This document shows positions 13,158-16,400 of a stretch of 64,000 nucleotides of DNA, one piece after another. The first letter of the stretch is position 1, and every line of letters starts with the position of its first letter. The translations under genes and the position numbers were made by a program. A model generated the notes under the pieces. The model saw only the letters and a program-made list of their open reading frames with translations. It searched no databases and was not told the origin of the DNA. This DNA comes from Octopus sinensis (Eukaryota), in NCBI RefSeq assembly GCF_006345805.1, contig NC_043008.1, positions 31,806,001 through 31,870,000 of the forward strand, read 5' to 3'.

Positions 13158-13412
13158 TCCTATTTTGATTTTTGTTTTGTTCTTCAGTTGGTAAGGTAGG
13201 AACTTCCACTTAGTCGTCTGCAATTTTCGTTTATCATTAACCTGAGTGACGTCATAGGTGACCAGTTTTTATTGTCGCTTGTATTATAAATTCCGGTGAA
13301 ACCGCCTGCAGTTGTCTAGATTCGTACTTGCTGCCAACGGCTCAAAACTAAGTCTTGAAGGCTTATTTCCAATTCTGCTCTTAAACGATTCACTACATTA
13401 ACTATTGACATA
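13158..13412 (+). promoter_or_regulatory. Promoter/5'UTR of copy B: CRE TGACGTCA 13247-13254, TATAAA 13285-13290, Inr-like GCAGTT near 13308-13313
   Basis: Perfect CRE palindrome about 30 bp upstream of a TATA box, no upstream ATG before the start codon, motifs conserved in copy C. Confidence 0.7.
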
Positions 13413-13463
13413 ATGGCTGGAATTCCACCTCCCAATAAGAACCCAGAGATTAAGTTTACCAAG
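13413..13463 (+). CDS. Omega-crystallin exon 1, copy B ([17 protein letters not shown]), likely the main first exon
   Basis: ATG at 13413, donor AAG|GTATAG, phase 0 into exon 2; NPEIKFTK|IFINN matches the ALDH N-terminal arm; TATA and CRE upstream. Confidence 0.85.
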
Positions 13464-16400
13464 GTATAGTAATTTTACCTTTTGTCTTTATTATATTCCT
13501 GAGTCCATAAGAAAAAAGAAAAGTTTTATACCATGTGTGTGTGTATTATTATTATTATTATTATTATTATTATTATTATTATTATTATTATTATTGTGCA
13601 ACAATGTTATCCACAGTGATTTGAATTCCGACGATTGCTTACTGGCCGAAAATTCAAAGTCACTGTCAACAACATTCTTGTACAAGAATAATAAATTTGT
13701 ACTCTGCAAAAATATAGAGTAACCCATCAGATTAATGTAAATCTGTTTTTATTATAATTGAACATAAAAACAAAAATCGGGACCAACTTCGTGCAAGCAT
13801 GAAGGCACGCTAGCAAAACGCTGATCCTCTAAATGAAAACCTTATCTGTCATTGTGATTTTATGGCTCGGAGCAAAGCAGGCCTTGCTGTTCACTCAAAA
13901 TAACATGTAGCAAATTATCCACAAGCACTCGTGCAAACTGAGTTCTGAGCTTGTTCCATTTGCCAAAACGTTTGCAAGGTACCGGCAGGCCTCAAAAGAC
14001 ACATGCGTGCCCATAGAACATAATTACCGCTTTATTTCATTGAATGGTCATTTGTCGTTCACGACGAGAAACCCATCACACACACACACACATACATACA
14101 TACATACACTACATATATATGTATAACATGTGTGTATGTATATTATATATATATATATATATATATATATATATATATATATATATATATATATATATAT
14201 ATATATATATATATATATATATATATATATATATATATACACACACATAGCAAAAGCAACAGTTGAAATGAATACAGTTATTCATTTCTATTTTCATTTT
14301 TAATTTTTGTTTTGTGCTTTAATTGGTAAGGTAGGAACTTCTACCTAGTCGTCTGCAATTTTCATTTCCCATTAACCTGAGTGACGTCATAGGTGACCAG
14401 TTTTTATTGTCACCTGTAATATAAATTCCGGTGAAAACGTTTGCAGTTGTCGAGATTCGTACTAGTTGCCAACGGTTCAAAACTAATTCTGAAGGCTTAT
14501 TTCCAGTTTTGTTTTTAAATGATTCACTGCATTAACTATTAACATAATGGTTGGAATTCCACCTCCGAGTAAGAACCTAAAGATTAAGTTTACCAAGGTA
14601 TAGATGTGATGATCACAGCTGGAACGACTTCGATCATAACTATGTCCGATCAAAGTTTACCTATATTACAAAACTAGTTAACGTGGGCGATTTTGGTTGT
14701 TCTACATACTTGAAATAACAACAGATCTCTGTCAAATACACCATTTGCATTTTAAGCTGCAAAGGACTTATTGGATAATGTAATCACCGATACATTATAT
14801 CTCAAACAACGAGACGGGATTGACTGGTTTGTCTTTGGTTATCAGATTGCTTGATCAAGGCCGATCAGGAACTAAAAAACAATAACGTAAATGTAAAAAA
14901 GGACAATGTATAAATAGTGAGACAGGTCAGATCCACTGCTGGTCTACCAACTCATGATTCCCCTTCAGTCAAAAGATCCAGTTAGTTGGGATTTTTCTCA
15001 TCTCAGCTATTTGGTTACGTCTCAAATCCATCAAATCAAACCCAGACGTCTTAAAAATAAGAAGTTAAGTAAATCATGTAGTCGTTGAATAATGTAGTCC
15101 TAGATACATTATATCAGTGAATAAGGAAAGGATGGTTACGGTTCAATCGCCAATGATTAGAGCTATAGCTGAACACAACTGATTTGGGGTTAAAAATTAA
15201 CAAAAACAATATTAGAATTATCACTATGACCATCACCACTTACAGGAACTATCTCAACAAAAGAACTTGTCGGTGGATATCGACGAAAACTCAGCTACTA
15301 TCTTGAATAAAGGACATATTGGATTACTTGGTACTACTAGATACACTATATTTGGATTTAAAGAGGAAGTGTGGTGGTTAGAGTAGAATACCATTGACCA
15401 TAGGCCTGCTTGATGAGGGATGACCTGGAATTTACCTTTCATCTTTTCGGGTTCGATAAAGTAAGGACCAGATTAGCACTAGGGTCGATATAATCGACTT
15501 GCCCCCATCTCCGTAATTGCTGGCCTGGTACTAAAATTTGAAATCCTTATCATTATCGCCCTAGTGGCAAGTGAATGAAATTGTTATTATTATTATTATT
15601 ATTATTATTGTGATTTGCCTCAGGTTCGGTCTTATTCCTGGTAGGAATTATGTGGATAGCTGGTTACTACCTGTAACCTTAGGTATCCACAAGTTTTCAG
15701 CAGTCTTTCAAGTGCTTAGAACCATCCTGATAATCCTTGCTGTCCTTAAGAGACAAACTTTCTATATGGGGTTGCACCGGGCATTCTATTTCAATCTCCT
15801 TCAGCCATTTGTCTATATCTTGTCTTACTGTTCCCAACGCACCAATTATTATACGCATGACCTTCACTGTTCGCCCCATATTTTCTCCATTCGATTCATG
15901 AAACCTCTTTTATTTGGCTTACTTCACAGCCAGCATTCTATTACTATTTTATTTTCATCTTTTACCCATTTCATTCTTTTCTTTTGCACTTTTCACAACG
16001 ATTTTGGTCCTGGTCAATAGCTTGATGACGACCTGTCGGAGCTTGATCAGATACTCCCGACCTGCCGTGCATGACACCGTCACTGCTAAGTTACAGTCCC
16101 GTTAGCGCAATTCTGGTTATTATTTAATTTTGACATCACTCATTTAGAGGTAGCATTTGTAAGGTTGTACAATCACCAATATTTATATCGTGAGACCATC
16201 ACAAGATAGGTTGCTAGCCAAGGATCCGAGAGACCACACCTACCCTCGTGTACATTGTTTCTAGTGCCACTGTCGTTCAATCCATTGTTTTATATCTTTG
16301 TATTTCACATTTTCATGTGGAGGAACGTGGCTTAGTCGTTAGTATGTCAGCACCATGATCGTAAGATTGTGGTTTCGATTTCTGGACCGAATGACGCGTT

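Follow-up and report, generated by a model that had tools for sequence, protein, structure and literature searches.

A second promoter and first-exon module in the omega-crystallin gene of Octopus sinensis is probably a decaying relic

Does the omega-crystallin gene of Octopus sinensis have two working promoters, or one promoter and the remains of a copy? In a 64,000-nucleotide (nt) stretch of chromosome CM016870.1 that contains this gene (the window), two modules of ~330 bp, B and C, lie in tandem ahead of exon 2. Each carries a promoter, a 5′ untranslated region (5′UTR), a short coding exon and a splice donor. An earlier note on this DNA suggested that the duplicated promoter could raise or partition lens expression or give two N-terminal isoforms, with decay of copy C as a fallback. 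Comparison with other cephalopods indicates that B is the working promoter and first exon and that C is probably a decaying relic of a partial duplication. All coordinates are positions within the window unless another locus is named.

Anatomy of the two modules

The gene was assembled as 14 AG/GT-bounded exons between 13413 and 41559, with a spliced open reading frame (ORF) of 495 aa. With exon 1B as its start, the product is RefSeq XP_029643562.1 (omega-crystallin, O. sinensis), residue for residue. The window agrees with the O. sinensis locus L002 over 48,147 bases at 0 mismatches. It matches Pfam PF00171 (aldehyde dehydrogenase, ALDH) and belongs to the same 90%-identity cluster as the Enteroctopus dofleini omega-crystallin P30841. 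The features of the gene and of its duplicated start are:

11684–11766, + strand: copy A, an 83-bp fragment holding the distal 5′UTR and the first 8 codons (MAGIPPPN), from the repeat search
13138–13469, + strand: module B, the promoter, 5′UTR and exon 1B of omega-crystallin, from the repeat, its landmarks and the RefSeq protein match
13470–14272, + strand: unique spacer between B and C, the start of intron 1 for B transcripts, containing (ATT)n and (TA)n microsatellites
14273–14603, + strand: module C, a paralogous promoter, 5′UTR and exon 1C within intron 1, probably a relic
18313–18417, + strand: exon 2, whose acceptor is common to either first exon, from the splice assembly
20048–20188, 24713–24839, 25702–25763, 29060–29188, 29656–29769, 31700–31802, 33714–33898, 34854–35018, 36057–36214, 38246–38320, 40190–40229 and 41527–41559, + strand: exons 3–14, AG/GT-bounded

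A repeat search of the window pairs 13138–13355 with 14273–14490 (85% identity, ungapped) and 13356–13469 with 14490–14603 (89%) as direct repeats. Global alignment of 13158–13469 with 14288–14603 (312 and 316 nt) gives 276 identical columns out of 317 (87.1%), with 35 mismatches and 6 gap columns; the BLAST core of the repeat, 13163–13469 and 14298–14603, is 89.3% identical over 307 columns. These results bear out the tandem ~310-bp modules described in the earlier note. Its tally of 29 differences in ~283 bp was of the right order, if slightly low. The similarity between B and C stops 6 nt past the splice donor, in agreement with its description of a repeat ending right after that point.

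Both modules contain the upstream box GGTAAGGTAGGAACTTC, with the conserved box of B located at about 13170–13227. A perfect cAMP response element (CRE), TGACGTCA, occupies 13247–13254 in B and 14382–14389 in C, and TATAAAT follows at 13285–13291 and 14420–14426, respectively. In each module a 5′UTR of ~100 nt precedes the ATG, at 13413 in B and 14547 in C, which opens a 17-codon, 51-nt exon (coding sequence 13413–13463 in exon 1B and 14547–14597 in exon 1C). The donor GT is positioned at 13464 and 14598, and in O. sinensis the donor sequence AAG/GTATAG is identical for the two exons. Both exons are phase 0 and either joins exon 2 in frame, yielding a complete 495-aa ORF in each case, so that at the level of sequence the proposed in-phase splicing of both copies holds. 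Relative to exon 1B, exon 1C of O. sinensis carries A2V, N8S, P11L and E12K together with one synonymous change (CCC>CCG), the same set that had been listed before.

The spacer (~0.8 kb) aligns in part with the corresponding O. bimaculoides spacer. Microsatellites excepted, it resembles neither the DNA that follows C nor the DNA that precedes B, and on this ground we rejected a simple tandem repeat with a 1.1-kb unit as a description of the locus. Scans of 7000–19000 against Rfam and for tRNA genes returned no matches.

The single promoter of Argonauta hians aligns with that of B. Four elements are common to the two: the upstream TTTTGTTCTyCAr box, CTGAGTGA(C/G)GTCATAG, the TATA box and two blocks in the 5′UTR. 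The bZIP-type site of Argonauta is TGAGTGAGGTCA and that of Octopus is the perfect CRE palindrome embedded in TGAGTGACGTCA; at the omega-crystallin locus of the cuttlefish, TGAGTCA precedes TATAAA by ~25 bp. These cephalopod promoters thus have in common a bZIP-type site placed ahead of a TATA box. Squid S-crystallin promoters have a layout of antioxidant response element (ARE) plus TATA box (PMC5737492). That source covers scallop, squid and jellyfish crystallin promoters only, the octopus promoter not being among them. As described there, scallop omega-crystallin/ALDH1A9 (Carosa et al. 2002) and squid S-crystallin SL11 and SL20 resemble the Octopus gene in having a compact TATA promoter with a bZIP-type site (ARE/AP-1/CRE class) tens of bp upstream; they differ in that the Octopus site is a perfect CRE palindrome.

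Distribution, rates of change and lesions

We compared the O. sinensis locus with those of O. bimaculoides (L001), O. vulgaris (L003), Argonauta hians (L004) and the cuttlefish Acanthosepion pharaonis (L005). Copies A, B and C are all present in O. vulgaris, where B is 100% and C (L003 16618–16949) 97.9% identical to O. sinensis. In O. bimaculoides, B lies at L001 9740–10057 and C at L001 10603–10851. In these two independent assemblies the sequence after each module is orthologous to the flank of the same module in O. sinensis, a placement that upholds the earlier view that B and C are not a collapsed haplotype. Argonauta hians and Acanthosepion pharaonis have a single exon-1 module. Because orthologous B and C modules occur in three assemblies and a single module in Argonauta and the cuttlefish, the duplication is real and old, having arisen in the Octopus lineage after the Argonauta split and before the split of O. 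sinensis from O. bimaculoides. Pervasive gene conversion between B and C was not found: ten fixed differences are common across the species, and one alignment column shows parallel change. In the open-access literature we met with no previous account of the duplication or of any octopus omega-crystallin promoter; this coverage leaves the subscription papers of the 1990s outside.

The six orthologous and paralogous modules (B and C in three Octopus species) were aligned and their differences counted. The counts are small, and because O. sinensis and O. vulgaris are near-identical they represent effectively two independent lineages. The background rate comes from BLAST-alignable non-coding DNA only and probably underestimates true neutrality. 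Between O. sinensis and O. bimaculoides, 9 of 237 sites differ in module B (3.8%) and 22 of 245 in module C (9.0%), compared with 1014 of 13547 alignable non-coding sites (7.5%) and 7.4–8.2% in the immediately adjacent intron. Fisher tests separate B from C (p=0.025) and B from the background (p=0.03), but not C from the background (p=0.39). Between O. sinensis and O. vulgaris, the counts are 0/329 for B and 7/332 for C; the local background within the same high-scoring segment pair is 108/6886 (1.6%), corresponding to an expectation of ~5 changes per module.

Parsimony over the 246 shared columns assigns 10 fixed differences between B and C, followed by 8 changes in the B lineages and 24 in the C lineages (binomial p=0.007). 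No part of C is sheltered: between O. sinensis and O. bimaculoides its promoter core differs by 7.4%, its UTR by 10% and its exon by 9.8%, whereas the corresponding values for B are 1.7% in the promoter core and 0% in the exon. The B promoter core of O. bimaculoides differs from that of O. sinensis by one substitution and a 9-bp deletion. Module B is thus constrained and module C evolves at a neutral-like local rate, because changes divide 8 to 24 between them, C changes at the rate of the local intron and exon 1B is unchanged. The earlier note had proposed a comparison of orthologous loci across octopods and squid as a check; the outcome of the comparison made here is neutral-like divergence of C beside conservation of B.

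The coding changes show the same asymmetry. Every cephalopod omega-crystallin that we retrieved starts with the consensus MAG[IL]PPP[NT][KR][NT]PEIK[FH][TSN]K, and exon 1B is nucleotide-identical (0 changes) in the three Octopus species. Exon 1C has accumulated 7 substitutions, 6 of them non-synonymous. A2V and P11L predate speciation and are common to all three species, N8S and one silent change are common to O. sinensis and O. vulgaris, E12K is confined to O. sinensis, and I13V and K17N are confined to O. bimaculoides. Five of the six non-synonymous changes (at A2, P11, E12, I13 and K17) fall on residues that are invariant in the retrieved octopod and squid omega-crystallins. The pattern resembles that of unconstrained sequence. 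Positive selection on the N-terminus would also fit, but is less economical because the non-coding parts of C drift in a neutral-like manner as well.

The most conspicuous damage to C is found in O. bimaculoides. The sequence TAACGTCA stands where the CRE should be, and a microsatellite replaces everything upstream of TTTTCGT, removing the upstream third of the module. The exon ends in AAT/GT rather than AAG/GT, so that the G at donor position −1 is lost and the donor weakened. In O. sinensis and O. vulgaris, no essential motif of copy C (CRE, TATA box, ATG, reading frame or donor) is damaged.

Relic, second promoter or enhancer

We propose that a single event in the common ancestor of O. sinensis, O. 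vulgaris and O. bimaculoides, after the Argonauta split, duplicated a ~330-bp segment (upstream box, CRE, TATA box, 5′UTR, 17-codon exon and 6 intronic nt), and that the extra copy, C, landed ~0.8 kb downstream of the original, in intron 1. Module B would have remained the working promoter and first exon. Module C would have been redundant from the outset, and no constraint is detectable in its later evolution, whether in the promoter motifs, the UTR or the coding part. Its still intact look in O. sinensis and O. vulgaris would reflect the shortness of the time elapsed; in O. bimaculoides it is visibly broken. In this scheme B, not C, is presumably the original copy, and C would be expected to contribute little or nothing to lens protein. 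The fallback of the earlier note, a decaying copy C, is thus the reading favored by the rate asymmetry, the exon 1C changes and the O. bimaculoides lesions.

Several observations weigh against a relic. Copy C of O. sinensis has no disabling lesion: its CRE matches at 8/8 positions, the TATA box and its spacing from the CRE are kept, neither the ATG nor the ORF is damaged, and the donor does not differ from that of B. Its upstream box differs from that of B at 2 of ~41 nt. The module may be transcribed in O. sinensis and O. vulgaris. An excess of six non-synonymous changes over one synonymous change would also be expected from positive selection on a new N-terminus, the counts are small and drawn from effectively two independent lineages, and an underestimated background would, if anything, give C an appearance of slight constraint. 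B and C are identical over 42 nt around the CRE, though a run of this length is not unexpected at 11% divergence; we roughly estimate that chance would produce one about one time in four at ~11% over ~310 nt. The corresponding stretch in copy C of O. bimaculoides has 3 substitutions and an indel. We rejected the run as a sign of constraint on C because it is plausible by chance and mutated in O. bimaculoides.

Among the alternatives, the reading in which both modules are working promoters survives best, yet we consider it unlikely. Module C would then fire in the lens or in another tissue, supply a variant N-terminus, and raise dosage or partition expression. In its favor, both O. sinensis and O. 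vulgaris have a complete copy C (CRE, TATA box, ATG, open exon and in-phase donor), which has persisted from before the O. bimaculoides split and has kept those motifs that are common with Argonauta. However, all segments of C change in a neutral-like manner (7.4%, 10% and 9.8%, against a background of 7.5%), its non-synonymous changes lie on otherwise invariant residues, it is degraded in O. bimaculoides, and the protein collection that we searched contains no C-form model. The suggested effects of the duplicated promoter, whether higher or partitioned expression in the lens or a pair of N-terminal isoforms, accordingly find no support in a copy with a neutral rate, altered invariant residues and lesions in O. 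bimaculoides.

The annotated proteins point to exon 1B. Both XP_029643562.1 (O. sinensis) and XP_014771974.1 (O. bimaculoides) begin with it, neither being named as an isoform, and 0 of the 5 members of the 90% cluster of octopod omega-crystallins start with the exon 1C sequence. A collection of 15 billion protein sequences does not contain the exact 495-aa C-form, a result that is uninformative, as the collection also lacks transcript-derived (Logan) octopus members of the B form. The N-terminal 99 aa of the C-form, used as a query, retrieved only unrelated short ALDH fragments from this collection, which holds no transcript-derived octopus omega-crystallin of either form.

Tandem alternative first exons, each with its own promoter and spliced to common downstream exons, are familiar from UGT1A and the clustered protocadherins. 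The omega-crystallin locus resembles these systems in its repetition of promoter, first coding exon and in-phase donor upstream of one exon 2, and in an origin by local duplication. It differs from them in having two full copies only, the second lacking purifying selection and broken in one species; the copies differ by 4 residues rather than by a distinct domain, and usage of the second is not documented. In O. sinensis each module has core elements and an in-phase donor, as alternative promoters do, but purifying selection across species, which should act on every such module, is missing from C. Relics of partial duplication, such as intronic pseudo-exons and pseudo-promoters, offer another parallel: like them, C is paralogous to a functional element, changes at a neutral rate, bears lineage-specific lesions and is accompanied by an extra truncated fragment (copy A). 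The difference is that C is formally still competent in O. sinensis and O. vulgaris.

In the study of regulatory evolution, crystallin recruitment is a textbook example. It is doubtful that in O. sinensis and O. vulgaris copy C acts as a second promoter and adds a second N-terminal isoform to the lens (V2, S8 and L11, with K12 in O. sinensis). If it did, the locus would represent a young, lineage-specific duplication of promoter and first exon on trial in an abundant crystallin, even as O. bimaculoides is losing the same copy.

It is very unlikely that C serves not as a first exon but as an intronic enhancer, a 'shadow' CRE cluster that aids promoter B. The CRE and upstream box of C are nearly identical to those of B in O. 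sinensis and O. vulgaris, and C lies just 1.1 kb from B. In O. bimaculoides, however, the same elements of C are mutated or deleted while exon 1B is unchanged and the B core nearly so, and the promoter part of C shows no reduction in rate. The chance that the O. sinensis assembly is at fault, through a mis-join or through haplotypes left uncollapsed, is negligible: a 99.2%-identical 1.4-kb tandem duplicate at the 3′ end of the gene, present in this assembly and not in the other two species, makes local errors conceivable, but B and C are ~11% apart, have their own orthologues and orthologous flanks in two other assemblies and show ten fixed differences that hold across species, so that the cross-species sequences have already refuted this reading.

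With C as a probable relic, the locus provides a natural comparison for a lens promoter, in which one copy is conserved, one is drifting and one, in a sister species, has already been broken. Promoter elements worth testing are the CRE and the upstream box, which B and Argonauta retain and copy C of O. bimaculoides has lost. Beyond this value for comparison, the finding is an ordinary relic of partial duplication.

Further first exons and neighboring elements

Copy A is derived from B and has no promoter. Tetranucleotide microsatellites, (TACA)n/(TGTA)n, border it on either side. The fragment is present in O. vulgaris (L003 14028–14115), and no orthologue of its own was found in the O. bimaculoides locus. 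Copy A ends in ...CCCAAT/GTATGT (11764–11772), where the (TGTA)n repeat supplies a consensus-like phase-0 donor; any transcript of copy A could thereby be joined to exon 2 in frame (MAGIPPPN/IFINN...). Microsatellites of the (CA)n, (TACA)n, (TGTA)n, (TA)n and (ATT)n types are unusually dense around the three exon-1 copies, at 11340–11680, 11765–11850, 12500–12940, 13545–13597 and 14070–14245. Because they border both copy A and copy C of O. bimaculoides, they may have mediated the truncations.

A further start is used only by the O. vulgaris annotation CAI9731050.1:

7349–7382, + strand: alternative 'first exon' encoding MTSGQAPVVVK

The model joins this exon, 6 kb upstream, to an 8-nt micro-exon, TTGGTAAG, at 13188–13195 within module B. 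The upstream exon sits in a stretch (4772–7394) that has no counterpart in the O. bimaculoides locus and no further copies in the window or in the loci of the other species. The micro-exon lacks its AG as well as its GT in O. bimaculoides, copy C lacks the AG, and the 8 nt fall within the box that is conserved as promoter sequence as far as Argonauta. CAI9731050.1 also reads through the donor at 40229, giving a different C-terminus. The upstream exon and micro-exon are probably an annotation artefact. Three different first exons have been put forward or could be used here, and the one chosen in the O. vulgaris model is implausible, which should serve as a warning for annotation.

The encoded protein has GQCRWSGAR (exon 9, 33750–33790) where the octopus retinal dehydrogenase P0011 has GQCCVAGSR. 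We take the ALDH nucleophile to be the second Cys of the GQCC motif, a position occupied here by Arg; this replacement is consistent with an enzymatically inactive crystallin. Lens expression of omega-crystallin is known for other cephalopods (PMC5737492). At the 3′ end of the gene, the last exon (41527–41559) and ~1.4 kb around it are tandemly duplicated (40952–42377 and 42401–43817, 99.2% identity), with the second exon copy at 42968–43000. This region is single-copy in O. vulgaris and O. bimaculoides; the duplicate either arose very recently in O. sinensis or is an artefact of the assembly.

The remaining ORFs of note in the window were read from their translations and resemble retroelements:

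1670–3060, + strand: separate reverse transcriptase fragment near the start of the window
50012–51796, − strand: reverse transcriptase, RNase H and integrase-like ORFs
54334–55162, − strand: gag-like ORFs with a CCHC-like stretch

The retroelement-like ORFs, at about 50000–55200 on the − strand and 1670–3060 on the + strand, flank the crystallin gene downstream and upstream, and the O. vulgaris annotation has an RVT_1 gene at the corresponding position. A short interspersed repeat with the core ...TTCGGGGTCGATAAAATAAGTACCAG...GGGGTCGATGTAATCGACT... recurs in introns and flanking DNA, on either strand. Copies lie at 15428–15518, 16891–16981 and 17075–17165, and there are many others (e.g. 8078–8266, 8769–8999, 38912–39052 and 61582–62151); the repeat yields a recurrent spurious ORF motif.

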